DNA of 16,798 bases, taken from contig MTSL01000181.1 of NCBI GenBank assembly GCA_002794465.1, forward strand, positions 1,113 through 17,910, in the 5' to 3' direction. This document shows, piece by piece, positions 1 to 16,798 of this stretch. Below the pieces are notes generated by a model. That model had not been told where the DNA came from and made no database searches. It saw nothing but the letters and a program-made list of their open reading frames with translations. A program made the translations under genes and the position numbers. Source of the stretch: Paramicrosporidium saccamoebae KSL3. Its lineage: Eukaryota; Fungi; Cryptomycota. Position 1 is the stretch's first letter. Every line of letters starts with the position of its first letter.

Positions 1-438
1 TCCTCGTGACCCGAGCCCTCTCTACTTCCACATAAATCTTTCCTTCTGTAACGTTGCGCACAGTCTCTATAAGCTTCATGCGAAGACTGGCATCAGCGAC
101 GGTGGGAATCCATTCGAGGCACTTTTGTACCATGCTCGCTACCGCTTGCTTCAGGATACTTCTCTTCTTGGACATGGTAACAACTACAGTATCAAGCTCG
201 TCAAAATCCCCAGCTCTGAAGCAAAGGGTAGCCATTTGCACGAGCACCTTTGTATTCCCGGCCAAATCTGCAGACATACGAGTGCTCTTTTCTACCGGTA
301 GAAGAGACTCAATAGCATCTTTAAGTTTCCCAGCCTAAATATGTCAGTTAGCCAAGTCAATAGTACCTTTGCGAGTGTCTCGCTCTGTTCAATGCTAGAG
401 TCAATGAGAGCCGGAGGGACTTGATTGTCTACGTCCAT
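1..438 (-). CDS. RPN5: 26S proteasome lid subunit Rpn5/PSMD12, 5' part (runs off the window start)
   Basis: Exons 438-367 and 334-<1; 32-nt intron 366-335 (GTACTA...GCTAAC...TTTAG). Spliced: MDVDNQVPPALIDSSIEQSETLAK/AGKLKDAIESLLPVEKSTRMSADLAG...SKKRSILKQAV...IETVRNVTEGKIYVEVERARVT. The VTEGKIYVEVERAR and KKRxxLKQAV motifs are diagnostic of Rpn5. Confidence 0.93.
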
Positions 439-508
439 CAGAGTGCAAGTAAAGACTAAATCATTATAGGCTTTAATGGTCAAAGTAAGTAAAGGCGAAA
501 ATAATGGG

Positions 509-571
509 ATCTTTGAACCCTAAATATACCTATGAGATGCGTATGAATGTCTTTATTCCTAGTTCAAAGAT
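509..571. repeat. Perfect 10-bp inverted repeat (ATCTTTGAAC / GTTCAAAGAT) with 43-nt spacer
   Basis: Arms at 509-518 and 562-571, read directly. A third GTTCAAAG copy lies at 677-684. Confidence 0.8.
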
Positions 572-678
572 AAGATACGATTACATGTGACGTGGTGTAA
601 TGTGAGGCACTCTTTCGCAATGGGTACAATGCCACGACTCCATGTTAACCCACAGAATCAAACTATACTTTTATCCGT

Positions 679-718
679 TCAAAGGTCTATATATTCATGT
701 CTACTCAAAGGTCTATAT
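679..718. repeat. 14-nt direct repeat TCAAAGGTCTATAT, period 26 nt, duplicating the QTRT1 stop region
   Basis: Copies at 679-692 and 705-718, read directly. Confidence 0.85.
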
Positions 719-1904
719 TTACTGTCAAAAGGGCCTCCACAACCCACTTTGGATATGTCTTAATATCAAGAGATCCATACCAGGCACCTAGGAATTCACG
801 GACAAACTCGGGAAATTGGCCATCAATGATGGCTTGGCGTGCATTCCTCATTAGATTTAGCTGAAACGAAATGTTGTGGATTGTTAACAAGTGGCATCCA
901 ACAGTTTCCTTGGCGGCAACAGAGTGGAGAAAGGCTCTCGTGTAGGTTTTGCACGTTAAACAGGAACAGTCGGCATCAATGGGCCGGTAATCGTCGCGAT
1001 ATTTTGCTTGCTTCAATTGCATATTTCCGCTACGGGTAAGCGCAGTGCCAAATCTGGCAGTTCTGGTGGGATACACACAGTCAAACATGTCAACCCCGAG
1101 TGCAACACAGACGATTAAATCAACGGCGTACCCCACTCCCATGCAATAAATGGGACGATCCTTCGGAAGCCTCTCAGTGCAGTGCAGTACAACTCGCCAA
1201 AATGTATCCTTATCCTCGCCGCCCGATAGACCGCCGATCGCATATCCGGGAAGATCTCGGTCCACCAAAGCTTTGATACATCTCGATCGAAGTTCTAAAT
1301 CGGTGCCGCCCTGAACAATCGGGAACAGATTCTGCTCATTAGGGCGTGAATGGGCGGCAATGCAGCGGTCAAGCCAGCGGATGGTCCTTTCCATCGCTTC
1401 CTCCACTCGAGCTCTAGTTGTAAGAGTGGCGACGACGTCGTCCAACTGCATGATTATGTCGGCGCCAATGGCATTTTGAAGCTCTATAGATTTTTCGGGA
1501 GTGAGAAGCATTTCGCTGCCATCTCGAGGTGACTGGAATAGGACACCCTCTTCGGTAATCTTTGCCAATTTCAACAGTGACACCATTTGAAAGCCACCGC
1601 TATCTGTCAACAATGCACGATCCCATCCAATAAATTTGTGTAAGCCTCCCACTTTGTTCAGCAACTCTTCCCCAGGTCTGAGTCCGAGGTGATATGTATT
1701 TCCCAGCATTATTTGACAGTTTAAATCGCAAAGCTGTTGACAGGCCAGCCCTTTCATAGTCCCTTGCGTTCCGACCGGCATAAAAACGGGCGCATCAACA
1801 GACTGATGTGGCAGATGAATACAAGATGCACGTGCCCTGCTTGTTGCACACTCGGCAAGAATTTCAAATCTGAGGGCCTTGTGAAGAGCAGTCGTCTTGC
1901 TCAT
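705..1904 (-). CDS. QTRT1: Queuine tRNA-ribosyltransferase catalytic subunit (eukaryotic TGT)
   Basis: Single exon; first ATG at 1904 (the track start at 1931 is TTG); 399 aa. Motifs [60 protein letters not shown] and the Zn site CSCLTC...H. Confidence 0.97.
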
Positions 1905-1981
1905 AGTAGCGCAGTGGAGGACCCTGGCCAAGTAACGTGGTCAGGGAGTCTCTTTCGTAATTATCCATCTCTGCAGCACAC
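1905..1981. promoter_or_regulatory. Putative bidirectional promoter QTRT1/TFA2 (77 nt) with inverted repeat
   Basis: Lies between divergent ATGs at 1904(-) and 1982(+). Contains CCCTGGCCA-(7 nt)-TGGTCAGGG at 1922-1946. Function is inferred from position. Confidence 0.6.
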
Positions 1982-2800
1982 ATGAACCCTCATTTACAAC
2001 AACAGCAGGAAGCTTTTAAGAAAAACTTGCAGAAACAGCAGGAGCTTATTAGGAGTTCTGTCTCTCGACCAGACCCTCCGCCATCACCGACGCCCTCCGC
2101 TGCCTCATCTGTTATAAGTAACAGACCGCTAAATTCAATTGTACATGCCATTATCACATATTTAAAGGTATCTTGTATTTCAGCATCGCATAAACTGTAG
2201 GAAATCAATCGTCCAGCATCCCTTCAGGAACTCTATGAAAGGCTCGGGCTTAATCTGACCACACAGCCCGACCTCTTGGAAAAGGTCTGTAGAAATGACC
2301 GCATTTTCTATAGCAACAATACACTTCGATACGAGCCTGCTTTTGCTATTCGAAGTAAAGAAGATATCATTGAAGCTCTTAGGAAAAGGAACGATATGAC
2401 TGGGATTGATTTGGCCGAACTAAAAGAAGCCTATCCAAAGATTGAAGAGGCCTGTATCGATCTTGCCAAGCGTAAGGAAATTTTTTTGATTAGACCCAGA
2501 GAAGATGGCCCAAAGGTGATATTTCTAAATGAATTCAAAGTAGAGAATGTTGTCGATGCAGACTTTCGTCACCTCTGGAGTCAAGTCGCCGTTCCTTCAG
2601 ACGATTTTGAATTACGAGAGTCTCTGGAGAAGGCCGGCATGAAGGCCTGTAGCCAGACAACGGGGATGTCTCTTGCCACGACAAAGCCCCGTGACTCCAA
2701 AAAGAAGACAACTGCTAAGCGTCCATTCCGGAGGATAAAAATTACAAATGATTATTTGGAAGGAATCGATTTATCAATAGATCCTGATACAAATAAATAG
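1982..2800 (+). CDS. TFA2: Transcription initiation factor IIE subunit beta
   Basis: Exons 1982-2167 and 2201-2800; 33-nt intron 2168-2200; 261 aa. The join AIITYLK/EINRPASLQEL, plus LEKVCRNDRI, YEPAFAIRSKEDI, GIDLAELKEAYP, FRHLWSQVAVP and C-terminal IKITNDYL, matches the TFIIE-beta pattern. Confidence 0.9.
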
Positions 2801-2801
2801 C

Positions 2802-4169
2802 TCAATGACTGATTGCTCCGGGATTAAATTTTGGGAATGTAATTGTCACAGACAGAGCAACTTCATCATCACTTTGCGGCAAGTCGTCTGAAGAAAAGGA
2901 TCTGGACATATTTCCGACACGTATTGACTTGCAGACCTGTTCCAGATGTCCCAGTCGCTTACTACATGTAAAAATGGCAGCAATAGTGTGCATACATGTG
3001 AGATCGCTGGTATTTGTTTACAAATTTCGATTGAAGTCGCTTCAATTTGGTCGTAAATTTTGATAGATCCTGCGATATTATTCCACTAATGTCATCAAGC
3101 GCGGGACAAAGAAAGTCATCGATGCTGTCTCTCGCCGATGGTACGATACCATTGCTGATCTCCTTTACCTCACTTTGGTTCATGATTGGAAGGCGTTGTT
3201 CTTCCGTCTCATTCAAAAACACATCGGGTCGATGTTTTTGACTAATAATGCATGACGAAGAAGAGCGTGAAAGGGGTGGAGGAGACGACTCACGGATCAA
3301 TGCATCTGCCAAATTGTCTGCCTCAGGAACCTTGACTGGGCCAGAAGAATTGCCAAGGAGGATTCCATTTGTCACAGACGTCCGTCCTATTTTTGGTACT
3401 TTGCGTTTCAAAGCCGACAGGGCGGTGGACAAAGACTCAAACGAGCCAAGCTCTACTTCCAGGAATACGTTTCGATCCGGTCCCTCTAACCCAAGTTGCG
3501 TTCGATTTAACACGCTCAAATTGTGAATTGAGCCGTATGTAATGTCGAGAACAAAAGGCTCGTCGTCATCTGGTCCCTTAAAGTAAGTGGTTAGTGGTAC
3601 TACTCTTACCCTTAGATTGATACTCACAGATTCACTGTTAACGTCAATCCAGAGACCACCGGCAATGCAGTTGTCAGAGTATTCTGTGTTGTTAAAGTGC
3701 ACACCAGCAGCCTTGATCGACGTGACTCTACAGCTTAAAAAGTGGAAAAGGGTGAACATTGCGCCTGCTTGCCTGTTGATTGTATTAAGATATTCGCGGA
3801 TATGCAGTGTATCCAATGGAGACACGATGATAGAAGCGACTCTGTCGTCTTCGGGTATGACATTAAGTTTAATACTTCGGGCAATCCTCGCAAGTCGACC
3901 CAGAATTGTCATCACTTGGCTCTGCAATTCATAGTCTCCAAGCTCTAATAGCTTATCTGCGAGGTTTCTACAACATAAGCATCAAAAAGATTCTACATTG
4001 TGTTCCAGATGTTTTCATTAGCCCAGTGGCAAACCTCGAGGGCCTCCTTTGTTTTGGTAGCAGAAATCTTGACAAGCGCGGCTTGCGCAGCGTCCTTTCT
4101 CTTTTCAAGCTCACCACCGCTGATAACACTGCTCCAGAGGATCTGAAAACTCGAGGATGCTGCCGACAT
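2802..4169 (-). CDS. Putative meiotic chromosome axis-core protein (SYCP2/Rec10/Red1-like), 434 aa
   Basis: Exons 4169-3997, 3967-2996 and 2961-2802; introns 3996-3968 (29 nt) and 2995-2962 (34 nt) keep the frame. LGDYELQSQVMTILGRL, IREYLNTINRQAG..FTLFHFLS, LWIDVNSESVS and RTSVTNGILLGNSSGPVKVPE resemble recalled SYCP2 N-terminal motifs; helical C-terminus. The gene model is solid; the family call is from memory. Confidence 0.7.
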
Positions 4170-4247
4170 AACTAAAGAGCGAGGGATTCATGCCCATTTT
4201 AAATATTACACATAGTATGGCAACTTTATTCTCAAAAAGGAGATTTC

Positions 4248-4710
4248 TCAAAGCATAATAATTTCAATCTAAACTGGTCAATCTGACGAGCATGGCAAAA
4301 TACATGTAACATGGCGGTCTCTTGTAGACTACATACGTGAAGACCGGCTGGGTGGTAAACTTGAGTGTTTTGCAAAGTTATGAATTTGTCGGCCTTCTCT
4401 AGGCACTCGGCCAATTTGCAGGGGGAAATCCAGTTCAGCAGCCCAAAGGTAAGCATATTGGCAATAACGAACATTAACTCTCTTTCGTGCCGATTTTTGA
4501 AAATGCTATTCACTTCGCCTATGGTCTTCAAAACCAAAGTCTTGTCTATCTTCACAGCACAGATGAAATACAACGGAATAGCGATTGTACCTTGTTTTGA
4601 ATCCTTAACGGACATTCTTCTATGAACCTTATCTCCTCGGGCTGTGTGTAGTCTCTCTCTATGAGCACTTTGTTTACCCCATCGTTGGGAGGAGAGTTGA
4701 TTTGGCTCAT
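4248..4710 (-). CDS. ERF4: Erf4/Golgin-A7 family palmitoyltransferase accessory subunit
   Basis: Exons 4710-4591, 4549-4304 and 4268-4248; introns of 41 and 35 nt; 128 aa. Spliced: LIERDYTQPEEIRFIEECPLRIQNK/IDKTLVLKTIGEVNSIF...FITLQNTQVYHPAGLHV...AMLH/IEIIML, fitting the ERDY..RF..P..TI..IN and N..Y.P.GL..IEI pattern. Confidence 0.82.
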
Positions 4711-4742
4711 CCAGTCAACACACTTCCAGGGGGAGCTCCAAA
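4711..4742. promoter_or_regulatory. Putative bidirectional promoter ERF4/DPH4 (32 nt)
   Basis: Lies between divergent ATGs at 4710(-) and 4743(+); contains CCAGGGGG. Confidence 0.55.
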
Positions 4743-5235
4743 ATGCGGACGCTCTATGAAGTGTTAAGTGTTAATTCGTCTTGCTCCACAGAAGAAGTTA
4801 GAAAGAGCTACCTAAGACTGGCCTTGTTGCATCATCCTGATAAGACGCACAGCCCAGCGTCCTCATCAACCCTAATACAGGCTCGCCATGCTTATGAAGT
4901 CTTAATGGACGCTGAAAGGAGGGCAGAATATGACAAAAAGGTTCGAGGTACATTTAGGAGCGGATACGCCTGACTGATGGTAGATGAATTGACATGGCGA
5001 GGCCAATGTGAGCTCATTTGTATGGAAGACATGTATATCAAAGGTACCTTTGATCAATCTTTTGTGATCCACAGATTCTGAGGTTCGCTCTGTTTGTCGG
5101 TGTGGTTCGGAAATTGGATTATCGTTGGCTGATCTGATTGCCGGATTTTCCAGGATTCAGTGTTCGTGCTGTTCTTTACGTATAGAATTTCAGTGTTCAT
5201 ATGACGAAATTTATAAACTTCAAAACGTTGGTTAA
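4743..5235 (+). CDS. DPH4: Diphthamide biosynthesis protein 4 (J-domain + CSL zinc finger; DNAJC24/Jjj3)
   Basis: Exons 4743-4947, 4984-5043 and 5075-5235; introns of 36 and 31 nt; 141 aa. J-domain with HHPDK, followed by CRCG...CSCCSL. Confidence 0.92.
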
Positions 5236-5267
5236 TTGAAATCAGCGTCCATGGCAAGGGTATCTAA

Positions 5268-5885
5268 ATGTCTTTCTTTCATGAGCCTCCCCATAGCAGT
5301 ACGGCTGTTGGTCCATCAGAGTCCATTGAAAAAGACGCCCACGAGGCTGATACTAGCGACGCAACACAATGTCGCTGGGCAGGATGTTCCGAGTCCTTCT
5401 CTTCAACGGACCTTCTTGGAAGGCACCTGAATGACGACCATGTTGGCAAGAAACAATCGAGCTATATCTGTGAATGGGAGGCATGCCTTAGAGGACGAGA
5501 GCCTTTGCCAAATAGGTTTGCCATAATCGCCCATCTCAGGAGACACACTGGTGAGCGGCCCTATAAATGTGACTCTTGCTCAAAAAGCTTTTCTCGGTCA
5601 GATGCTCTAAATAAGCACATCAAGGCACAGCATTTTACAGGTGAAAACCCGGCAAGTCACCCGGGCATCATTTCAGTTGGGCGCACACGGGAAAAAGTAG
5701 AATCTGTGACTCCAAGCAGTCCATCGAGCAAATTGCACGGCTTGAGGCAATACTTGGATATTGTAGAGTCGGAAAGGGAATCCCTTCAAGCCGATTTGCA
5801 CAATGTACGTACCAGAGTTAAGCGGCTGAGGGCTGAAAAAATTGTGATTCTCGACTATATTCTAACTAAAAAATACCCTTCCTGA
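5268..5885 (+). CDS. Gli/PacC-type triple C2H2 zinc-finger protein with C-terminal coiled coil; resembles INO80 subunit Iec1
   Basis: Single ORF, 205 aa: CRWAGC..H..H, CEWEAC..HLRRHTGERPYKCDSC..HIKAQH, then LRQYLDIVESERESL...KRLRAEKIVILDYIL. The architecture matches recalled S. pombe Iec1-like proteins; orthology is unproven. Confidence 0.8.
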   Translation: MSFFHEPPHSSTAVGPSESIEKDAHEADTSDATQCRWAGCSESFSSTDLLGRHLNDDHVGKKQSSYICEWEACLRGREPLPNRFAIIAHLRRHTGERPYKCDSCSKSFSRSDALNKHIKAQHFTGENPASHPGIISVGRTREKVESVTPSSPSSKLHGLRQYLDIVESERESLQADLHNVRTRVKRLRAEKIVILDYILTKKYPS

Positions 5886-5934
5886 TAAACAGGTTTATTT
5901 GTAAGAGAACGTCAGGTTCGCATCAAAGGGGCTA

Positions 5935-6620
5935 CTACTGGTAAATAGACTCCTCCAAAGACTTGTTAAGCGAAGCAACACGAGTAGCAACGCTAAGATC
6001 AATCGTTTTATCTCCAACCTCCACTAAAAGCCCCCCCATGATTTTCGGGTCGACAATCACATTAACTTTTGGCACCTGCCCTTCTTGGAGAAAACGAGAG
6101 ATTACACTCTTCTTGACAGATTCGATAGTCTCCCGATCCAATTCTGCCGCAGAGGTGATCTTGACAGCAACCTCTCGCCTGTGGGCGCGCATAATTTCTT
6201 CAAAACTCTCAATTATCGGTAGAGTCTGTGCAAGCCTGCCATTTTCGGATACAGTGCGGAAAAAGTTGACCACGATTTCAGAGTAGTTCTGCTTGCTCAG
6301 CATGGAAAGCACAGTAGCGCTCTTTTGATCGCGACGGCAGGAGGGGTCTTTAAGAAAGATTTGCAGCTCAGGTGACTTGGTGATGGCAGCTTTTACTTTT
6401 GTCATCTCGCCTTCCACTGTGCTTAAATTCCCTTTTTTCATACACGCACTATACAGGGCAGTTGCATATCTTCCTTCAAGACTAAACACTTTCAGGGGGA
6501 CCTAAAACCAATAAGAGGCAATGATTGCAAAATTTCAACTGTTCCATTAGAGATACTTGCAAAGGTTCGGCGCTAAAAGTAAGTCGTTTGCACACGCAGA
6601 TTGTAAAGTACCGCAATCAT
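5935..6620 (-). CDS. ATP5: Mitochondrial ATP synthase OSCP (subunit 5 / ATP5PO)
   Basis: Exons 6620-6612, 6572-6540 and 6501-5935; introns of 39 and 38 nt; 202 aa. MIA/RRTFASISNGT/VPLKVFSLEGRYATALYSA...NFFRTVSENGRL...VDPKIMGGLLVEVGDKTIDLSV. Confidence 0.95.
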
Positions 6621-6661
6621 AGCGCAATTGAACTCCGGCACCCCTGCCGCGTCTCCGTCGC
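6621..6661. promoter_or_regulatory. Putative bidirectional promoter ATP5/SNX3 (41 nt)
   Basis: Lies between divergent ATGs at 6620(-) and 6662(+); GC-rich, with CCCCTG (CAGGGG on the minus strand). Confidence 0.55.
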
Positions 6662-7149
6662 ATGAACACCACATCTGAGAATGAGGCTTCTGTCGTAGAG
6701 GACTTGTATGCATGCCCAGAGAATATTATGACAGTGCATGTCTCAAATCCAATCACCCATCGTGGAGAATCTGACCCCTATACCGACTATGAAATTTATT
6801 GCAAAGTATTTGGCTATTATGCATGCTTTCTTACATCTCAGACGAGCCTACCGCTATTTAAAAAGCACGAATCCTCTGTTCGTCGAAGGTATTGCGAATT
6901 TCTGCAATTGCGCGAAGTCCTGATTGCTGAAAATCCTGGTGTAAGGATTCCCGACCTGCCGTCGAGAAGGATTTTTGGCAACAGATTCAGTGATGCTGTA
7001 ATCGAGGAACGACGGGTTGGATTTCAAAAGTTTTTACAAACGTAGGCATAATTATTGTTTCACCCTTTAGAGTTTGTACTCATCCCATTATACAAAACGG
7101 CCCGTCTGCCAGACTCGTAATCTCTTTTTTGCAAGATCCCACCCATTAA
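6662..7149 (+). CDS. SNX3: Sorting nexin-3 (PX-domain only, Snx3/Grd19)
   Basis: Exons 6662-6805, 6842-7041 and 7071-7149; introns of 36 and 29 nt; 140 aa. YACPEN..V.NP.TH, YTDYEIYCK/TSLPLFK...VRRRYCEF, IPDLP, NRFSDAVIEERRVG, VCTHPIIQNG. Confidence 0.93.
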
Positions 7150-7218
7150 TCACAGACTGATTAGGATCTGCTAGCGCTTCGGTGCGCAATCCTACGGCGG
7201 CAAACATATCTTCTGTGA
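7150..7218 (+). other. Structured element: C(UUCG)G-capped hairpin inside a 7-bp closing stem; candidate ncRNA or 3'UTR element
   Basis: TAGGAT(7162-67)/ATCCTA(7189-94), TGC/GCA and GCGC/GTGC around the TTCG loop (7178-81); outer TCACAGA(7150-56)/TCTGTGA(7212-18). No known RNA family recognised. Confidence 0.5.
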
Positions 7219-7305
7219 AAATTAATTCTGCACATAAACATGAATACAGTCAACTCCGTTATTGCTACGTTTGAAAAATTGCACATAGCTAATTGTATAA
7301 CTCTA

Positions 7306-8984
7306 TTATTCTGCAGATTTCTTCTTTTTTTGCCCTGCTCGTGAAAGCGGCCCCCAATTCTTAGTCGGATTCTCAGGGAAACGCTTCAATCCTTGCTCTC
7401 TACTGGGTGGGTTGGACATTGGGTGTTTTTCCAGGCTACACAATTATGCATGATGATAAAATAATGTACTTGATAGTGCTTGAGTAAGACTCGGAGTGTT
7501 CTAGAGCATGGTGTTGAGCAGTGTTGTTGGGATAATCCTGCGGCTTTCTGTCGGACTAAAAATTATTTTAAAAACAGCCGACGCTGTACCATAACTTGCA
7601 TAATCTTCCAAAGTAGGGAAACTGGTGCAGTGGTCTTGATGGCGAGCGGTTCGCAATGACTGCCTGAAACGGCATAGCCCGCATTCAAGATTGCCGAACT
7701 ATTGGAATGAGACTAATGCATCGCGAACGTACCGGAATTTAACCAGAGGAGGCACTGAAATTTTTAAAAAGGAAGCCATTTCGGGAAGGGTGTAGAAAAA
7801 CGGATCTTGCAATTCCTAGAAAATCAGTGTGTAGAAATTCAAAAAGTACTTCCGAAATCACTGCACCAAAACCCTGAATTCGGTCACGAGTACCCAGAAA
7901 TGGCAGATTTTCCGATGAAGCTGTGGCTATAACCTTTTTCACAAATTCCGCGTCATGGAGTGCTCCAAGCCACATTGGCCCACAGGTCTCGACGCGTGAG
8001 TTGCAGACTTGGCATGTATTTGGACATCCAGGGACATTCTGAGTAAAGCCGTAGCTTTTGGCTCCGGTAGATGCCAGCAAAAATGGACTAGAGGAAATTG
8101 TGCGACATTGCACACATTTGGTCACTATTCCGCGTTTTCTACAGACATCAACGAATAGGATCTAGAGTTACGTGGATGACATTTTGACATTCTGCGGCGA
8201 ATCGACGATTCGAACAAAAACCCTGGCGTAAAAATCGATACTGCAAGACATAAGTGGGACAATGTGCCGCCGGTATCGGTTAGCGGATATTTCAATCGAC
8301 TGTAAAATGAGCCTTAAAGCCTACAAATTACAACTCATGAGTAAATCCTACAGCTTCGTGACAAACATCTCCTCGGACAGGGAGCCCTCCATATTTAGCA
8401 AAACACGTTTCAGGGTGCGTCGCACATAACACAGCAAGATCAGTGCAAGTTACACAAAGTAAGCCACCATCCGCAATACTTTGTACTGCAGAGTCTATGA
8501 ATGGAGCTGCAGAGCCATATGGGTCCAGATCAATAACGTCCAGCTGTTGCCCCTCGTATTTAAGGCGGTGCATAGACGCATTTGCGTCACCCTGAATCGG
8601 CTGTATTATGTTGATTATATGTGACGCATCTTCAGAGTTGAGCTTAACGTTGCGCTTGATTGTCTCGACAGCTGAAGGATCCAAGTCATTTGCATATATC
8701 CTTACTATTTTTGGGAGCTCTTTCGCATAGCGAATGGACCGCAGGCCAGTTGCTGATAAAGCCTCCAAGATCGTAAGTCCATCAAGATTTCTTTTTTTTC
8801 TTTCCGACAAGTAAATATCAGAGAATGTTCTGATGACCGAGATGCTCAAGTCTCGGTTGAACTGCTGCACCGGATTGTAAAACACTTCGCCTTTTGGGAA
8901 ACGAATATGAACAGAGCCCTCTTTGACGACAGTGTAGTCATCACAACTAGGGCTCAGAGAGTTGCTGTGCGTATTATCAGTCAT
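7306..8984 (-). CDS. TRM1: tRNA (guanine26-N2)-dimethyltransferase
   Basis: Exons 8984-8352, 8320-8172, 8138-7850, 7815-7733, 7698-7590, 7555-7470 and 7435-7306; introns of 31, 33, 34, 34, 34 and 34 nt; 492 aa. VFYNPVQQFNRDLS, LEALSATGLRSIRYAKE, IDLDPYGS, GGLLCVTCTD, CGPMWLGALHD, RSAILNAGY..SGSH, RFPENPTKNWGP, terminal KKKK. Confidence 0.96.
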
Positions 8985-9117
8985 AGAATAGGGAGCACGC
9001 TGCACACCAAGACGGCGAGTTATCCGTAGAATTGAAAATTCACCCCTTGTCGGTCACCTTGGGTGATTGTGCAGGTTATTATGACAATATTTTATTATCC
9101 ACTTATTTATGCAAATA

Positions 9118-10122
9118 TTAAGAATTTTTGAACTGTGCAGGTTTCTTAGATAAAAATGCTTTCATTCCCTCTTTTTGATCGTCCTATTAATTTAATAACA
9201 CCGATCATAAATAAGGTACAGTGGAAAAGGTCGAGTGGAACAGCCTGCGCTCAAACTCGAGGCCTGCATCTAGATGGACCTCAAAAGCTACAAATTAAAA
9301 ACACCCACAGCTTACACTTATTCACAGCTTCTTTGCACATCATCACAATGGGTGACGAGAACTTTGCTATTTCCGAAGCAGTTTTTAGAGACTCATTTAC
9401 TAGAGTATCACTCGGGAAAATCTTGCTAACCAGCCCTAATCATAATATAAATCAGCTGAGCTGCAGTACCGATCCGCTCAGCCTCTTCAGCAGAGATATG
9501 ACGTCCTGTAAGCATCATTTCCATGGCCTTGGATTTTCCGATAGCCTTTGGCAACCTCTGTGTTGCCCCTCCGCCCGGAATTGTTCCAAGTTTGATTTCA
9601 GGTTGTGAAAATTTGGCATTTTCTCCTGCATAGATAATATCACACATCATGGCCAGTTCACAGCCGCCTCCAAGCTAATGCGTAAATTTTCGTGTTTGAA
9701 TGTACAGCAAATCCGTTTACTGCAGCAATGATAGGTTTTCGGAAAGCACGAAACATTTTTGACCAGTGGCCCAGAAAGTCGTTCGAGTAGCATTGTGCGA
9801 AAGACAGATTGGCCATTTCGGCAATATCAGCGCCAGCTGAGAGTCAGTTTCATCAATCAAAAGATGTACCCGCAAAACTCTTTTCGCTTCCTGTCAAAAC
9901 CGCAGCACCAAAGTCTCCAGATCCATCAATAAATTCCAAGGCCTTCTGAAGCTCCAATGTCAACCCCGAATTCAGTGCGTTTAGTGCCTCTGGCCGATTC
10001 AGTTCGATTAAAGCGACATTTTCTCTGGCCGAGACCTTTAGAAATTTGTAAGCACCAACTTGCAATCATGATGATTCTGCTAAGCCAGAGATACCTGAAA
10101 GAAGCCGCCGGCTAGAGTGCAT
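9118..10122 (-). CDS. ECHS1: Mitochondrial short-chain enoyl-CoA hydratase (crotonase family, ECHS1-like)
   Basis: Exons 10122-10095, 10058-9870, 9836-9706, 9674-9470, 9435-9316, 9287-9220 and 9183-9118; introns of 36, 33, 31, 34, 28 and 36 nt; 268 aa. [66 protein letters not shown]; both catalytic Glu are present. Confidence 0.93.
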
Positions 10123-10188
10123 GGCTCGACGCGTGCACAATCTACCGAAAGACAACATTATAATATTTTCCACAAATTTTAAATTCCT
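10123..10188. promoter_or_regulatory. Putative bidirectional promoter ECHS1/PSF1 (66 nt) with MCB-like ACGCGT
   Basis: Lies between divergent ATGs at 10122(-) and 10189(+); ACGCGT at 10129-10134. Confidence 0.5.
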
Positions 10189-10767
10189 ATGGGCCAATTC
10201 AACGAGCCCGTGCAGTTAATCCGAGAGGCTATTCGCCAGTCCAGTAAACTTGAGCCATACAATGAAGAGAGCGTCCGTGCAACACTAAGAGAAATTTGTA
10301 TACTGTTTGAAGAGGCAGCGAAATGGAGCAAGGTTGGAGAAAAGGAAAGTCTCTTTGATGATTTTGACCAAGCACGTCTTGTGGGAGTCAAAGCGCTGAT
10401 CGAGAGGAATAAGCGCATCCTGCTTGCGTACCACTCTGCCCGTCTAGATTGCATATCTTCAGCAGCTTCGGTGGTTCCCAATCTCCCTCCAAAGACAATG
10501 GAAGCAATGACTCAGATCGAAACACAATTTGCATCCGACTATTATCAAATTCTTAGGGGGCATGCTGCACTCTTCGATGGGATTGATATTTGCTCTTACC
10601 AAAGCCCTCCACATGATTTGTATGTTCAAATCAGGGTCAGACAAGACTGTGGAGTGATCCAGACGGAATATGGACAATTGCATCTGAACCCAGGATCGTT
10701 TCACTTTGTAAGGCGCTCAGATGTCCAAGGACTGCTCGATCAAGGGCTTGTGATACACATTAGGTAA
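10189..10767 (+). CDS. PSF1: DNA replication GINS complex subunit Psf1 (GINS1)
   Basis: Single exon, 192 aa: LEPYNEESVR, IERNKRILLAYHSARL, PPHDLYVQIRVRQDCGVIQTEYG, HFVRRSDVQGLLDQG. Confidence 0.95.
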   Translation: MGQFNEPVQLIREAIRQSSKLEPYNEESVRATLREICILFEEAAKWSKVGEKESLFDDFDQARLVGVKALIERNKRILLAYHSARLDCISSAASVVPNLPPKTMEAMTQIETQFASDYYQILRGHAALFDGIDICSYQSPPHDLYVQIRVRQDCGVIQTEYGQLHLNPGSFHFVRRSDVQGLLDQGLVIHIR

Positions 10768-10816
10768 TTAAATTTGCGAAATAAAATAGTTATAATTGTT
10801 ATCCGTTGCGCGCGCA

Positions 10817-11700
10817 ATGATGGGATACGGATCACGGGGTGGTGGTACAACACGCAATTGGGTTCAGTACCAAACTCTTAGGTGGGTTCATGGACGCCGA
10901 TAATGGGTCCCAGGGAACTCTGACGAAAAACAAAAGTGGAGTCCAAACCATTCGACCAGTCACAATTAAGCAACTTAATGAAGCTGAAGTTCCCGAGGGC
11001 AGTGATGCTTTTTTCGTGGATAACGGTGGCAAGAGTACAGAACTTGGCCAGGTTTAGTTGCGCTCTGTAATGATTTACCTTGAAGGTTGTTATTGTGGGA
11101 TGTGTTCGCAGTATGAAAGAGAGCCCGGCCAGTGTGGATTACATTATTGAAGATGGCACTGGCAGCATTTCGGGAAAATGCTGGCAAGACAAAATTGGCG
11201 CGCCCGTATTGTAGGCCGCTGAAAGAGTTTATGATTTTAATTTGTAGGAATGGCCAGTGGGCTCGTGTATACGGGAGTTTGCGTTCGATGAAGGATTCCA
11301 GGACGCTGAATATTTTTTCAATCAAAGAGATTGTCGATCACAATGAAATCACGTTGCATTTTTTGCAGGCTATACAATTGAACCTCCCCACTGTATTTTG
11401 CGCATTCGTCATTTTATTATTTAGCGCGACACTCACGCACTTGTTGGTTTTGATTCCCTGTCGGCATTACAGAAGGCTATCTTGAGCGTTTATTCAACTT
11501 GCACCGTTCCCCAAGGCCTGCATTACGCCTCGGTAGTGCGAGCGCTATCGGACCGATACTCTTCCGACGATATCAAGTATGCGTTTCCATGAATCCAATT
11601 AACTTTCGATAGGGATACCATTACATGGCTCATGTCTGAAGGATATATATTTGAAACTCATGATTCTGATCATGCTAGAATTGTCACCACCACAGTTTAG
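10817..11700 (+). CDS. RPA2: Replication protein A 32-kDa subunit (RPA2/Rfa2)
   Basis: Exons 10817-10844, 10882-11051, 11086-11210, 11248-11392, 11425-11576 and 11613-11700; introns of 37, 34, 37, 32 and 36 nt; 235 aa. GGGGFM, TIRPVTIKQL, VVIVGCVR, IEDGTG, WARVYGSL, DHNEITLHFL, winged-helix WLMSEGYIF. Confidence 0.93.
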
Positions 11701-11735
11701 CTCGCCCATTTAAGATTAATACACATTGGGTGCTC

Positions 11736-12821
11736 ATGTTTATTAACCGTCGGTTTATAGGCGGCGCCATCTTTAGTTCGATCTGGATTCTCTGTTGGTT
11801 TGTGCTGCGATATACAACTACAACTGATAGAGAAGACTTTGACTTTGAGATTTCCACAGAGAGAGCAGAAACGCAGCATATTTTTGCTGGTAACTCCTCC
11901 AATGCGTATGGGGTGCTTTGTACAAACATGCGAACCGTATATCCCGCGCTAGTTCTCTTCGGGCAATTAAAGGAAGTGAGTCTCCATGTTCATAATCATG
12001 TCGTCCTCATGCCCGAGAATCTGATTGCTCGCGTTGGATGTTTGTTCAAAGGCCTCCAAGTCAAGCCTTGGGCCATCCCACGGGAAAGGCCAGCATTGCC
12101 AGACTACCCGGTTCAAAGCCCGAGCACCCGCAAAAGAGACCGAATACTGTGGAACAAGCTCTTTGCTTGGAAATTGGAGGAGTATCACAAGCTGGTGCTC
12201 CTTGACGCGGATATGTTGGTTTTGAAGAATATTGATGATATTTTTACTATTGAATCGGATCTTGCCGGCGTGCCTGCATTAAGCCTCGACGAAAAGATTT
12301 TGTTTTGGGATCCGCCCGATCCTTTTGAATCCGAGCCATTGGATGCAAACAGTTGGCGGAATTTTACAAAGCCAACGAGATTTGAGCCCGGGCATTCTGG
12401 ATTAAATGGTGGGGTAATGCTTTTGCGACCAAGCATAAAGACGTACGATGAACTGATCCGAGCGTCACAGCTACTCAAGGAAAGGACATGTTGTCCGACA
12501 CAGGAATTTATTTACAGGTTTTTCGAGCTTCGAGGACAATACCACCGACTTCCTCCCGTATATAATATGCGCAAGGAACACAAGCTTTCTATAGAAGAAA
12601 GGGCGGCGTGGCAGGATATCAAGATTTATCATTTTGTAGAGAGGAAAAAGCCGTGGCTCATGGGCAGGATAGAGTCAAAACCTTTCAAGTTTGCAAATAG
12701 CTGGTGGGAAAAGGCAGACAAAACTGATCTTTACTTGAGCAACTTGTTTAGTAACGACACCGAGACCTTGGCAATACTTCGAGAAGTGCGTCATGCTGCT
12801 ATCAACCCACAACATGAATAA
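11736..12821 (+). CDS. Family 8 glycosyltransferase (glycogenin-like fold) with N-terminal membrane anchor
   Basis: ATG at 11736 (the track start at 11730 is GTG); 361 aa. Hydrophobic N-terminus, WNKLFAWKLEEYHKLVLLDADMLV (DXD), NIDDIF, LNGGVMLLRPS, YN, and HF...KPW. Confidence 0.88.
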   Translation: MFINRRFIGGAIFSSIWILCWFVLRYTTTTDREDFDFEISTERAETQHIFAGNSSNAYGVLCTNMRTVYPALVLFGQLKEVSLHVHNHVVLMPENLIARVGCLFKGLQVKPWAIPRERPALPDYPVQSPSTRKRDRILWNKLFAWKLEEYHKLVLLDADMLVLKNIDDIFTIESDLAGVPALSLDEKILFWDPPDPFESEPLDANSWRNFTKPTRFEPGHSGLNGGVMLLRPSIKTYDELIRASQLLKERTCCPTQEFIYRFFELRGQYHRLPPVYNMRKEHKLSIEERAAWQDIKIYHFVERKKPWLMGRIESKPFKFANSWWEKADKTDLYLSNLFSNDTETLAILREVRHAAINPQHE

Positions 12822-12859
12822 AAGCAGTGCCGTAACAATAATGTGTTTTAGTCTATATG

Positions 12860-13680
12860 CTAGTCTGAAAATATCATTTTCAACTCTCCTGAAGCAAATC
12901 TAGGTAAGAGGGTTTTGAAAATCAGGCCCAGCAATGGTTTCACAATTTCTGGGATATCGAATATTGATCTCAACTTGACATCTCTCTCGACATCAATGAT
13001 CAGCAGACAAATATCGGACAATAAATTTGCATCTGCGTTAATAATATCCGCGACTCTTGACGGAGTTCCGATAGCGACTGGAACCTCACGACTCTTTAAA
13101 AAAGAAAGCTGATCCTTAAGCTTAATATGCTTGGCAAAGAGTTTTCCGACGGTGCATTTCGACCTCACCTTGTCCATCCTCCTAAAATAATCAGATTTTC
13201 ATTTCATGATGCTCACTTTAGGATTTCTACGGCTCGTATAGCAGAGCTAGACAATATAAGGATCTGACATTTAGGTTTTTTGAAAATTTTAGAGACATTT
13301 GGAACTAAATAATTAGTAGGAGCTAACATGATGTGGTACAGGCTTCAATAGAAGCGACTATAGAAGTTTGATCCTTCCGATGGGCTATGAACGCCTGCTT
13401 GATTTTGGAATATTCTGCCATTTCTAAGCTCGATATTCCGGGAGTAGCTTTTTCGAGCAAGTTTATCAGGAACTCTGCTGACGCGTCACGGTCTAGTTGA
13501 GCAAGGTTCACACGCACCTGATGGGATCCATCTTTCTTCTTTTTAGCCTAGTTACTAAGTATATTGACAAAGAACGCATACTTTTGATGGCTTTCCCACT
13601 AGCGGTTCGTTTGTGGAGGAATTAGGTGCATCGACGTCCCCAGCCACAAAGTAGTCGACAGGGACATGCTCATCCGCCAT
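12860..13680 (-). CDS. CMS1: Cms1 / CMSS1, 90S pre-ribosome-associated helicase-fold protein
   Basis: Exons 13680-13582, 13547-13340, 13304-13217 and 13181-12860; introns of 34, 35 and 35 nt; 238 aa. ILILSSSAIRAVE, KLFAKHIKLKDQ, IGTPSRV, LLIID..DVK.R..DIPE. Confidence 0.87.
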
Positions 13681-13717
13681 TGTCCAACGGATCGGCCAGG
13701 GTGCTGGGAAAAAGTCC
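13681..13717. promoter_or_regulatory. Putative bidirectional promoter CMS1/UTP21 (37 nt)
   Basis: Lies between divergent ATGs at 13680(-) and 13718(+); contains GGCCAGGGT. Confidence 0.55.
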
Positions 13718-16317
13718 ATGACCACAGATGAAGCTGGAGCCAAGCGCTTCCATGGAGGGTCAGAGACAACCAAATTATATTCATACTTTCGAGCTGTGGG
13801 GCGGGTGGCAGATGGTATTCCAGCTTCCGTGAACTACATGGGGGGTGTGCCGTATGTGACTACCAGTGTCGGCCGATCGTTTCAAATTCTTGATGTATCT
13901 CCCCTCGGGAGTATTCTAATATTTGATAGGCAGAGTCGCTGAACGTTACATTTTCCAGCTCGGAGCTCGATTCTAAAATCTTGCGCTTATGTGGTAAAGA
14001 TGAGTACACCTATGTGCTCACCGAGAACAACATTCATCTATTTAATCGTGCCCGTCTACAACACTCTGTGTCTTTGGAGAGTTGTAACGTCGTTGCTTCT
14101 TTCGTGCTTGGTGGCTGCTTGGCTGTCCTATACACTGAACGCTTATCATTTTATGAACTGCCATCGTTGGCGATCCAGAACAGTGTCGATTTTGACGGAA
14201 CCTCTGAAGCAACTTGTTTTGTTCATCCAGCTACCTATCTGAACAAAGTGCTTGTTGGCTTTGCAGATGGACATTTGGAGCTTTGGAATACAAATTCTTC
14301 CAAGTTAGTGTTTTCATTTCCGGCTTTCGAGTCACAAGTGACTTTGCTCTGCACAGCTCCTGCGCTGGACGTTGTTGCGGTTGGCCTCAAGAATGGTACT
14401 GTGTGGTTGATGGACATTCGAAAGAATAAGCGTCTTTTTTCCCTTTGTCATTCTGCCGCCATTTCGGGAATCGCTTTCCGTACTGACATTAATGACGAGT
14501 CTCAAATAGCTGTCGGTCTCGAGAATGGCACTGTTGTTCTGTGGGATTTGGAAAGTCGCAAAATCCATTCTACCTGGACTGCCCACGAAAGCGTCTCTGT
14601 TGCTACCGTTCAGTTTATCCAAAGCCAGCCTATCCTCATTACAACGGGAAACGACAATGCCATTCGTGAGTGGATCATTGAAGGCGCTGATCTGCGAATG
14701 CTGCGTAGTCGTTCAGGTCATTCCAAGCCGTCCAAACTTGTTAGATTTTACTCTGATGGTGAAGCTATACTATCGGCTGGTGGAGACAAGTCTTTCCGCT
14801 CAATTTCAATGATCAAAGACTCTCAAAGCGTTGAAATGTCCCAGGGTTCCATTGAAAGCATTAGCCGCCGCGCACAGGTGAGCGCCGAGGATCTCAAGTT
14901 GGATCCGATTATCGGGTTTGATTTTTTCTCCACAAGTGATTTGAAATGGGACAATGTGGTGACGGCGCATGAAAAATCGCCCATAGCAAGAACCTGGAGA
15001 GCAGATCATAGAAAACTCGGATCTCATGAACTTCGATCAGCTGACAATTCTTCTATAACTTCTGTGACTATGAGCTCTTGCGGAAACTTTGCAATAATCG
15101 GAACTCTAACGGGTTGCGTGGATGTTTTCAACGTTCAATCGGGGCAACACAGAAAGCACTTTACAGGTCCAAGTTTCCCAGTAATTGGTCTTGGGGTCGA
15201 TGCGGCTAATCAATACATTGTCCAAGTCTACTCCGATGGAACCATAAACTGCACTGAACTTTGCAATGGCCGAACCAAGTTTTCATTTAAACTAGAACAC
15301 ACAGTTTCAAAGGTTTCGTTTTGCTCTGAAGCCGAGCTCTTGATGGTGGCCCTGTCAAACCACGAAATCCAGATTTTTGATGTTCTAGGCCGCACGATCG
15401 TCAGACGATTTGTTGGACATTCATTACAGATTACTGACGTTGTGTTTTCGCAGGATGGACGCTGGGTAATTTCCGCGAGTGAGGACTTGTCCATTAGAAC
15501 ATGGGACATGGCCACCGGTCTGCAGCTTGACGTGCATGAGCTTCCCTCAGTGCCAGTTTCGATTTCTTTGTCACCCAAGTTGGATTTCCTGGCCGTCGCT
15601 TTGGAGGGCGACGTGGCCGTTCATATATGGACAAACGTGAGCATGTACAAACCAGTTGTTTTCCAACAATTTCAAAACCATTCTCTCTCTGCAATTGAGT
15701 CAGTTGTCGACGAAGCTCTATTGGGGCTTGTCAATTTGTCTTTGGAGCCACGCAGTAAATCTGTCAATCTCTTCCATTTGGACTCGATCAAGGCGCGTAA
15801 TAAACCTGTCCTGCCCCCAAAAGCTACTGAGCGAGTTCCATTTTTCCTGGACGCTCTTTTGGGATCTTCTGGAAATCAAAAGCGAGATGCTAGCGGCGCC
15901 AAGAAAAACGAAACTGACGACAGCCCCAGTGGAAATCATTTAGAGCTCTGTCTAGCAGGACTGTTGCGGTCTGAAAAGGGGCAGGATCAGGCGTTTGATT
16001 ATTTAAAGTCTCTGGGCCCATCAACGATTGATTTAGAGATACAGAGTTTGGTTGCCAATTCCTCCGTAGAACTTGACAGCATCTTGAAATTGATAAGAGT
16101 AATAACCCAAAAAATCGAGCAACGCGCGGATTATGAATTGGCAGTAACATTCTTAAATACCGTCTTGAAAGCTCACGCACATCTCATTTCAAGTTACCCA
16201 TCTGAATTTCATAGTGCTCTTCAAAACGCCAGGGATACACTAAGGTCAACTTGGTCAAATCTCGAAACACTATTTCATGAGTCTCTTTGCTTGACCCAGT
16301 TTGCTCGCGGCAATTAA
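13718..16317 (+). CDS. UTP21: SSU processome UtpB subunit Utp21 (WDR36)
   Basis: Exons 13718-13894 and 13930-16317; 35-nt intron 13895-13929; 854 aa. YFRAVG..TTSVGRSFQILD, HPATYLNKVLVG, LRSRSGHS, KWDNVVTAH, VRRFVGH..FSQDGRW, PPKATERVPFFL, LKSLGPSTIDLEI. Confidence 0.95.
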
Positions 16318-16350
16318 TTTGCACGGTTTTACGATATCATAAATTATAGA

Positions 16351-16798
16351 TTATTGTAAGGCTAGAAGTAAGACCCTGTTGATGGGTGAGCTATATTTAT
16401 TAAGATGTATGGCTCCTTTATTGGTAGCCATCCTCGACATGGAAAGAATGGATTGTGGGATCGCCATTGCTATATCTGGGTTGGACATCAATAACACGTG
16501 GATACCGCCTAATAAACCCTTTTAGTGCAAGAAAGTATATCTTTATTAAAGACGCCATTACAGAACACCATCCTCGGGATAGTGATATAGCGAATCGATT
16601 AGCTGGGTATTTGAGGATGTCTTCCTAGTTTGGAGCAATCAAAGAAAGAGCGAGATCTGTATCCATACTATTCTAGGACTACCAGTAACCAAGTTTCCTT
16701 CCCGCCTGACTTGGTCCGCGGCTTCATCCCCACTACGCTACAGGTGTATATTTCGAACCAAACAAGATTGTTCAATAATATTATTATACAGCTTCATT
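16351..16798 (-). CDS. Possible 3' end of an unidentified spliced gene entering from the right
   Basis: Candidate introns 16668-16625 (44 nt) and 16561-16519 (43 nt) join the open frames RSGDEAADQVRREGNLVTGSPRI/EDILKYPANRFAISLSRGWCS/GLLGGIHVLLMSNPD...RVLLLALQ*. No homology recognised, and these introns are longer than the others modelled. Confidence 0.3.

Follow-up and report, generated by a model that had tools for sequence, protein, structure and literature searches.

Introns of about 20-30 nucleotides (nt) occur in Paramecium. Those of Stentor coeruleus measure 15-16 nt, with stringent conservation of GUA alone at the 5' end and a branch A at a fixed position, yet both the U1 5' end (ACUUACCU) and the ACAGAGA box of U6 are canonical in this ciliate (PMC9505925). 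Among fungi, a switch from A to U at the fourth intron position (+4) in Saccharomycotina has been tied to the loss of METTL16 and SNRNP27K, in intron-poor yeasts whose splicing signals are more invariant (PMC11732430). Rozella introns of about 30 nt without conserved motifs have been mentioned, and microsporidia have few introns or none, those that remain keeping conserved motifs at the 5' splice site and extended ones at the branch point (PMC6349667). Here we describe 33 introns of similarly small size in Paramicrosporidium saccamoebae, a rozellomycotan (Rozellomycota) and fungus-like parasite of amoeba nuclei. They lie in a 16.8-kb window, by which we mean the whole stretch of DNA analysed, positions 1113-17910 of contig MTSL01000181.1 (17,910 nt; NCBI GCA_002794465.1), and most begin with GTA followed by a pyrimidine, mainly C, without the usual G at +5.

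Paramicrosporidium saccamoebae lives inside the nuclei of Saccamoeba and has a 7.28-Mb genome of 46.9% guanine plus cytosine (GC) with 3,750 annotated proteins (PMC5701793). The P. saccamoebae genome paper does not mention introns or splicing, and a 644-genome survey of fungal introns did not include the species. In the literature that we searched, Paramicrosporidium and splice sites come together only in passing, with a 120-bp intron in an S23 gene (PMC6349667).

Splice signals of the 33 introns

Gene models were built from three-frame displays, and every intron had to have GT-AG ends, leave the reading frame intact and agree with protein families or homology. Only one GT fitted the frame in almost all cases, and the choice of donor was thus independent of positions +3 to +6. 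A first pass gave 32 introns, and a scan for leftover GTA...TAG candidates then added the second intron of ERF4 (4269-4303). A scan based purely on open reading frames (ORFs) and blind to motifs recovered 28 of the 33, but among 1,156 candidates in 218 clusters, and was set aside as too noisy. The final set, to which all P. saccamoebae figures below refer and which comes from one 17.9-kb contig, comprises 33 introns, all GT-AG, with outer coordinates 335 and 13929. At +3 they carry A in 30, T in two and G in one; at +4, C in 15, T in 10, G in five and A in three; and at +5, A in 10, G in nine, and C and T in seven each. The acceptors are TAG in 27 (82%), CAG in three and AAG in three. An earlier reading of the same DNA, which we call the original prediction, had reported the same number of introns between the same outer coordinates, with 30 A at +3, the same four counts at +4, nine G at +5 and mostly TAG acceptors with three CAG and three AAG; our independently built models reproduce each of these counts exactly.

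The original prediction had called this donor atypical, with GTA, a bias to pyrimidine at +4 and no preference for +5G, and the counts bear out that description. The distribution at +4 departs from intron composition (chi-square p=0.0014), with C enriched (p=5.6e-4) and A depleted (p=0.03). Taking as exonic background the 108 unused GTA sites on the sense strand of exons, C follows GTA in 50% of donors but in 19% of unused sites (Fisher p=0.0017), and A in 7% against 28% (p=0.014). A pyrimidine occupies +4 in 25 introns and a purine in eight, an enrichment that is marginal over intron composition (p=0.04) because the introns are already T-rich. Pressure for stop codons in retained introns was considered as a cause of the +4 bias and rejected, since it would favour A or G there (TAA or TAG), the opposite of what is observed. 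Position +5, by comparison, is indistinguishable from background, whether this is taken as intron composition (p=0.12) or as exonic GTA sites (p=0.63). In eukaryotes G usually makes up 75% or more of this position; the 27% found here (95% confidence interval 13-46%) is incompatible with a frequency of 75% (p=1e-8). The remainder of the donor is equally loose: the 33 introns begin with 20 different hexamers, none is GTAAGT or GTATGT, none has AGT at +4 to +6, only two are of the GURAG type, only about eight are preceded by AG (our own count of the flanks), and the mean match to CAG/GTAAGT is 5.0 of 9.

The introns are narrowly distributed in length (28-41 nt, mean 34.1, standard deviation 2.8), with a body of 40% T and 36% GC. 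Branch points had been described as degenerate, and so they are, although a loose yTnAy motif is present in 25 of the 33 introns against 15 expected in shuffles, 25 being also the highest count in any of 1000 shuffles; the branch-like A lies mostly 8-11 nt from the 3' end (-8 to -11). The intron density is 2.3 per kb of coding sequence (CDS). With one site per 463 nt of pre-mRNA, about 8.9 bits are needed to specify a splice site, whereas the donor supplies 6.7 bits and the acceptor 7.5. There are moreover 76 GTA...HAG decoys of the right length in the window, 61 of them wholly exonic. These decoys differ from real introns in T (26% vs 40%) and GC (45% vs 36%) and in the frequency of the branch motif (15 of 76 vs 22 of 30), and TAG ends 11 of the 61 exonic decoys as against 27 of the 33 introns. 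Given the weak donor, the weak acceptor and the many decoys, recognition must combine several weak cues with fixed spacing, and the reliance on intron length that had been proposed from the sequence is plausible. Taken together, a narrow length range near the lower limit, a GUA donor with single sites too weak to suffice and stop codons upon retention are best read as a tiny-intron syndrome.

The exonic decoys may serve as sites of alternative splicing. Intron-like exonic segments that are apparently left unspliced include 14480-14509, 11920-11952 and 15466-15497, all on the plus strand, and GTACTGACATTAATGACGAGTCTCAAATAG in UTP21 is a 30-nt, in-frame exonic decoy with a CTGAC motif.

Support from protein homology and uncultured relatives

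Several lines of evidence support the introns as modelled. After splicing, single unbroken Pfam matches are obtained to TRM (14-376 of 376), ECH_1 (3-250 of 251), Erf4 (2-114 of 116) and CMS1 (43-249 of 250). The spliced enoyl-CoA hydratase (ECH) aligns with human ECHS1 (PDB 9rgq) over residues 30-279 and five splice junctions, none of which is gapped, the sole gap being of one residue and distant from all junctions; likewise, three junctions of TRM1 align without a gap to PDB 2dul. Retention would shorten the ORF in 31 of the 33 introns, and eight of the nine introns of 3n length contain an in-frame stop. About 17 intron positions are common to one or more of the uncultured relatives L001, L002, L007 and L009. 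About nine introns were placed mainly by frame logic (gene4 introns 1 and 2, ECH intron 1, OSCP introns 1 and 2, RPA2 introns 1, 2 and 4, and intron 1 of the CMS1-like gene, CMSS1), and these sit in N-terminal stretches or where conservation is poor. In the 22 or so introns with the firmest homology anchors (a hand count) the pattern is the same, with C at +4 in 11, T in five, G in three and A in three, and +5G in seven. With GT-AG ends throughout, removal that restores a homologous protein, a branch-like motif and positions common to relatives, the modelled elements are ordinary U2-type spliceosomal introns of about 34 nt; they lack the extended donor complementarity to U1 and U6 at +4 to +6, which is a typical, not a defining, feature of that class.

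Public assemblies contain at least three uncultured lineages that resemble Paramicrosporidium, represented by L001 and L007 of GCA_047514055.1 and by L002-L004, L008 and L009 of Logan SRA assemblies (SRR12926096, SRR27341044 and SRR26965757 among the Logan records of relatives); a literature search by the accessions of these records (JBCAWG, GCA and SRR numbers) returned no paper. Four of the uncultured relatives have the genes of the window in unchanged order, and across the relatives gene order is conserved whereas GC and intron length vary over wide ranges, of 45-60% and about 30 to 120 nt. The introns present vary as well: a 54-nt intron of QTRT1 in L002 has no counterpart in P. saccamoebae, and L007 has an OSCP intron at a site that is unsplit in P. 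saccamoebae. The relatives' intron candidates mostly join open frames that are long on both sides.

The lineages differ in their donors as they do in intron length. GCA_047514055.1 (L001 and L007), with 52-58% GC and introns of 69-119 nt, has +5G in 10 of 11 introns, +4C in one of 11 and CTAAC-like branch sites. L002 (Logan SRR27341044; 59% GC, introns of 35-88 nt) has +5G in seven of 13, and A is commonest at +4. L009 (Logan SRR12926096; 45% GC, introns of 29-40 nt) has +5G in four of 13, with A again commonest at +4 and C in one of 13. The P. saccamoebae window combines 45% GC and introns of 28-41 nt with nine +5G and 15 +4C among 33. Accordingly, +5G is found in 13 of 46 introns of the two tiny-intron lineages versus 17 of 24 in the longer-intron lineages (p=0.0009). 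At +4, C occurs in 15 of 33 introns in P. saccamoebae but in 4 of 37 in the pooled relatives (p=0.0014), and A in 3 of 33 versus 15 of 37 (p=0.003). This contrast indicates that loss of +5G accompanies intron shrinkage, whereas the bias to C at +4 is peculiar to P. saccamoebae; the suggestion in the original prediction that a +4C preference would be unusual thus holds against three related lineages in which the preference is absent.

We consider it probable that these introns are recognised by a minimal-pairing, intron-definition mechanism with ordinary small nuclear RNAs (snRNAs). The bases G+1, U+2 and A+3 are those held in the catalytic core of spliceosome structures, and through positions +4 to +6 the donor is normally located by U1 and by the ACAGA box of U6. 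In P. saccamoebae, where introns have been squeezed to about 34 nt, the donor retains just G+1, U+2 and A+3 plus a weak pyrimidine preference at +4, mainly for C, and the +5G and +6U contacts with U1 and the U6 ACAGA box have been lost. The intron would then be read as a unit composed of GUA, a U-rich and low-GC body, a loose yUnAy with its branch A about 8-11 nt from the intron end, UAG and a spacing of 28-41 nt, and retention would be policed by premature stop codons. Minimal pairing is favoured by the precedent of Stentor, in which GUA-only donors coexist with canonical U1 and U6, so that changed snRNAs are not needed to explain the loss of +5G.

Several observations weigh against this mechanism. 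It leaves the +4C preference unexplained, and L009, the other tiny-intron lineage, prefers A. The samples from the relatives are small (11-13 introns each) and were partly picked by eye, and the splice sites of P. saccamoebae are known here from the genomic sequence of one contig. Exact look-ups of 10 spliced proteins in a collection of 15 billion protein sequences found none of them. Finally, Rfam searches revealed no snRNA gene in the window (E-value mode) or in five related loci totalling 81 kb (gathering threshold).

The original prediction had suggested an altered U1 or U6, or the loss of METTL16 or SNRNP27K; the Stentor precedent weakens the former idea and the yeast pattern the latter. 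Of the alternatives, loss of METTL16, the enzyme that writes N6-methyladenosine on U6, and/or of SNRNP27K is a possibility that we hold to be distinctly less likely; the advantage of +4A would have gone, and donors would have drifted to C or U. Such a loss would fit the rarity of +4A (3 of 33, compared with 28% where exonic GTA goes unused and 15 of 37 in relatives), and the association is documented in yeasts (PMC10581693, PMC11732430). However, the yeast switch goes to U, whereas in P. saccamoebae C (15) exceeds T (10) at +4; yeasts have few introns with more invariant signals, as opposed to 2.3 introns per kb of CDS and 20 hexamers among 33 introns here; and the loss of +5G would be left unexplained.

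Less likely again is a re-coded snRNA pairing, in which the U1 5' end, or with still smaller likelihood the U6 ACAGA box, would place a G opposite +4 and read C through a G-C and U through a G.U pair; that pairing at +5 and +6 has become dispensable by this route is correspondingly doubtful. A lineage-specific change of this kind in U1, or in a +4-reading protein of the U1C, LUC7 or SNRNP27K type, by which C or U would now be selected whatever stands at +5 and +6, is improbable, and we would give similarly low credence to the history that it implies, in which the re-coded state would be recent and derived from relatives still using GTAAGT-like donors. The pyrimidine at +4 in 25 of 33 introns and the strong enrichment of C over both intron and exonic backgrounds speak for re-coding, as does the absence of the bias in three related lineages, which is expected of a lineage-specific, trans-acting change. 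Yet pyrimidines at +4 exceed what intron composition predicts only marginally (p=0.04), eight introns have a purine there, and the U6 ACAGAGA box is, to our knowledge, invariant across eukaryotes, which we count against a re-coded U6. In addition, the GUA-only donors of Stentor function with a canonical U1 (ACUUACCU) and U6 (PMC9505925).

Least likely by far is that mis-modelled splice sites, an unrepresentative contig or non-spliceosomal interruptions have produced the pattern as an artefact: about nine introns stand on frame logic only and one 17.9-kb contig was modelled from genomic sequence, but donors were set by the reading frame and not by their own sequence, the 22 or so homology-anchored introns (hand tally) show the same pattern, junctions are gapless in alignments to solved structures (9rgq, 2dul), all 33 introns are GT-AG, about 17 positions match canonical-looking introns of relatives, and an earlier reader reached identical counts independently.

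Individual introns, gene neighbourhood and public models

The RPN5 intron (335..366, minus strand; 32 nt, GTACTA...TAG) fuses MDVDNQ...LAK with AGKLKD and shares its position with an intron in L002, and the downstream exon yields a PSMD12 N-terminal Pfam match. Splicing of the TFIIE-beta intron (2168..2200, plus strand; 33 nt, GTATCT...TAG), which has same-position introns in L002 and L001, raises the Pfam score for the TFIIE_beta core from 23.5 to 40.7 bits, with coverage of 2-66 of 66. In gene4 (2802-4169, minus strand), intron 2 (2962..2995; 34 nt, GTATGC...TAG) is placed with lower confidence by frame logic only, joining ORFs of 339 and 71 codons, and intron 1 (3968..3996; 29 nt, GTAGAA...TAG) likewise by frame logic, its downstream exon being homologous to L002 from residue 59. 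The 434-aa (amino acid) product of gene4 has no Pfam match, and its sole detected homologue, found at the syntenic position in L002, is a weak one (23% identity); the protein seems to evolve fast and to be restricted to its lineage.

On the minus strand, ERF4 has two introns, of which intron 2 (4269..4303; 35 nt, GTATTT...TAG) gives the spliced C-terminus ...MLHIEIIML and corresponds to an intron at the same place in L002 that is followed by IEIMLINT, and intron 1 (4550..4590; 41 nt, GTACAA...AAG) has a same-position intron in L002; splicing raises the Erf4 Pfam score from 36.8 to 57.2 bits in one stretch (2-114 of 116). A canonical-looking GTATGT in the 3' region of ERF4 was rejected as a donor, since the sequence downstream of it is coding and homologous in L002. 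DPH4, on the plus strand, has intron 1 at 4948..4983 (36 nt, GTACAT...TAG), supported by frame and a same-position intron in L002, and intron 2 at 5044..5074 (31 nt, GTACCT...CAG), whose junction is crossed by a CSL zinc-finger Pfam match (3-51 of 55) and whose position is again shared with L002. In OSCP (minus strand), intron 2 (6502..6539; 38 nt, GTTGAA...TAG), with a donor that is not GTA, offers the sole frame-compatible route to the conserved VPLKVFSLEGRYA exon, and intron 1 (6573..6611; 39 nt, GTACTT...TAG) joins MIA to RRTFASISNGT, a plausible presequence; both are of moderate confidence. This two-intron model replaces one with a lone 55-nt GTATCT intron, which was discarded for shifting the frame.

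SNX3 (plus strand) has an in-frame, stop-free intron 1 (6806..6841; 36 nt, GTATTT...CAG), with same-position introns in L002 and L007, the removal of which restores YEIYCK-TSLPLFKK as in relatives, and an intron 2 (7042..7070; 29 nt, GTAGGC...TAG) that is crossed by a PX Pfam match and has a counterpart at the same position in L002, to which the C-terminal exon is 67% identical. TRM1, on the minus strand, has six introns. Intron 6 (7436..7469; 34 nt, GTACAT...TAG) leads in frame into the C-terminal exon NPPSREQGLKRFPENPTKNWGP, which presumably resembles the usual Trm1/TRMT1 C-terminus, and intron 5 (7556..7589; 34 nt, GTACAG...TAG) is placed by frame, the continuous TRM Pfam match stopping near its junction. 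Intron 4 (7699..7732; 34 nt, GTACGT...TAG; KFR/SAILNAGY), which lies inside the TRM match (14-376 of 376), intron 3 (7816..7849; 34 nt, GTACTT...TAG; VISE/ELQDPFFY) and intron 1 (8321..8351; 31 nt, GTAGGA...TAG; CHEA/ALRLIL) supply the three junctions that are gapless against 2dul, and the last of these has a same-position intron in L007. Intron 2 (8139..8171; 33 nt, GTAACT...TAG) is set by frame and falls within the single continuous TRM stretch.

The five gapless junctions of ECH (minus strand) against human ECHS1 are those of intron 6 (9184..9219; 36 nt, GTACCT...TAG; STFST/DDQKEGM), intron 5 (9288..9315; 28 nt, GTAAGC...TAG), intron 4 (9436..9469; 34 nt, GTACTG...TAG; ERIG/LVSKIFP), intron 3 (9675..9705; 31 nt, GTACAT...TAG; after NGFA) and intron 2 (9837..9869; 33 nt, GTACAT...CAG; KSFA/AGADIAEM), with L007 introns at the positions of introns 5 and 4. 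Intron 1 (10059..10094; 36 nt, GTATCT...AAG) joins a presequence exon to the mature protein by frame logic and is of lower confidence. In RPA2 (plus strand), intron 1 (10845..10881; 37 nt, GTACAA...TAG), in the Gly-rich N-terminus, is likewise a lower-confidence placement by frame logic; intron 2 (11052..11085; 34 nt, GTTTAG...AAG), atypical at both ends and of moderate confidence, gives the sole frame-compatible junction, ELGQ/VVIVGCVR, at the start of the OB-fold; and intron 4 (11393..11424; 32 nt, GTATTT...TAG) lies by frame logic between two conserved blocks. Intron 3 (11211..11247; 37 nt, GTAGGC...TAG) is crossed by an OB-fold Pfam match and has a same-position intron in L007, and intron 5 (11577..11612; 36 nt, GTATGC...TAG) is crossed by an RPA_C match (45-105 of 106) and coincides with a 34-nt intron in L009.

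In the CMS1-like gene (minus strand), the CMS1 Pfam match (43-249 of 250) crosses the junctions of intron 3 (13182..13216; 35 nt, GTGAGC...TAG), which has a same-position intron in L009, and intron 2 (13305..13339; 35 nt, GTACCA...TAG), and intron 1 (13548..13581; 34 nt, GTATGC...TAG) is placed by frame, with a 34-nt L009 intron at the matching position. The UTP21 intron (13895..13929, plus strand; 35 nt, GTATCT...TAG), matched in position by a 35-nt intron in L009, retains the VTTSVGRSFQILD block, which we take to be conserved in Utp21 proteins. The public donor for this gene (GTGACT, 74-nt intron) deletes 13 residues and was rejected because it removes that block; PSACC_02930 of P. saccamoebae is 98% identical to the UTP21 model built here.

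The window has about 45% GC and holds 16 protein-coding genes, whose coding regions are separated by 1-266 nt, mostly by 30-80 nt. Five divergent gene pairs have start codons 30-77 nt apart (1905-1981, 4711-4742, 6621-6661, 10159-10188 and 13681-13717), and hence their bidirectional promoters are extremely short or their transcripts overlap. Convergent genes stand nearly back to back, the stop codons of TFIIE-beta and gene4 being 1 nt apart (2798-2804) and those of other pairs 38-49 nt apart (5886-5934, 12822-12859), so that 3' untranslated regions must overlap on opposite strands. At two divergent pairs a CATG palindrome (6661-6664 and 13717-13720) makes an ATG available on both strands, and the minus-strand ATG of each opens a longer alternative ORF (OSCP, CMS1-like) that overlaps the neighbour's start codon; OSCP and the CMS1-like gene were modelled from downstream starts, and their start sites are provisional. 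On the left, a run of N (a scaffold gap at about 938-1112 of the record MTSL01000181.1) breaks the RPN5 gene and the window begins directly after it; the 1.1 kb of contig to the left consists of this gap and the intron-less rest of RPN5, with no extra introns. On the right, the last 480 nt (16318-16798) hold no recognised gene. A DHHC palmitoyltransferase gene adjoins the 3' side of UTP21 in relatives, and no similarity to it was detected in 16318-16798. Two GTA...TAG intron-like segments lie there on the minus strand (16470-16505 and 16625-16668). A tRNA search of the window found none, and an Rfam search (E-value mode) matched no RNA family. An exact look-up of the intron-less QTRT1 protein and a chimeric seven-protein query aimed at transcript-derived proteins gave no matches.

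The public annotation, made by MAKER with Augustus trained on Rhizopus oryzae (PMC5701793), has 10 models on the contig where we find 16 genes, and the tiny-intron pattern has clearly misled it there. RPN5 is fused with QTRT1 (843 aa) and PSF1 with RPA2 and GT8 (633 aa); ERF4, DPH4 and the CMS1-like gene are missing; and OSCP (156 aa), SNX3 (127 aa), TRM1 (260 aa) and ECH (94 aa) are truncated or unspliced. The 252-aa TFIIE-beta model implies about 60 nt of intron instead of 33, gene4 is given 393 aa instead of 434, intron length differing in both, and UTP21 has the wrong donor. Only one of the 16 genes, the intron-less zinc-finger gene, matches its public model exactly. A protein set with such errors is an unreliable basis for calling METTL16 and SNRNP27K present or absent. 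If the contig is typical, the figure of 3,750 proteins and the gene losses deduced from it need re-examination, and fungal splice-site surveys that rely on the public P. saccamoebae annotation would overlook the pattern.

Comparison with known systems

The usual rule is that genome reduction brings fewer introns and a stronger consensus. Contrary to this rule, P. saccamoebae combines about one gene per kb with very weak signals and an intron density of about 2.3 per kb of CDS. Within the same phylum (Rozellomycota), Rozella allomycis has a similar intron density of 2.5 per kb (PMC8476143), but the report of short introns there is a passing remark on two introns, without a donor logo. Microsporidia such as Encephalitozoon cuniculi form a sister lineage with compact genomes and short introns, from which P. 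saccamoebae differs in being intron-rich with degenerate motifs. The Saccharomycotina switch is similar in the depletion of +4A in a reduced-genome fungal lineage; however, those yeasts keep +5G, whereas P. saccamoebae has lost it, is intron-dense and has degenerate signals.

The closest resemblance is to the tiny introns of ciliates, which share the narrow lengths, the GUA donor, UAG-type 3' ends, the U-rich body and a branch site that is weak in consensus and fixed in position. The introns of P. saccamoebae are about twice as long as those of Stentor, and they prefer C at +4 while the commonest Stentor intron starts GUAAU (PMC9505925). As P. saccamoebae belongs to a different supergroup (Holomycota) from the ciliates, its tiny-intron state arose independently, giving a separate origin on the fungal side of the tree. 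The syndrome itself was already known; what is new is that it occurs in Holomycota, where it comes with an unusual preference for C at +4 and with intermediates that can be traced. Unlike the ciliate comparison, the present one includes close relatives with normal-looking introns, which makes the transition traceable, and because some of these have introns of 70-120 nt with GTAAGT-type donors at the same positions, they form with P. saccamoebae a natural series on what changes in a spliceosome that gives up +5G pairing as introns shrink.

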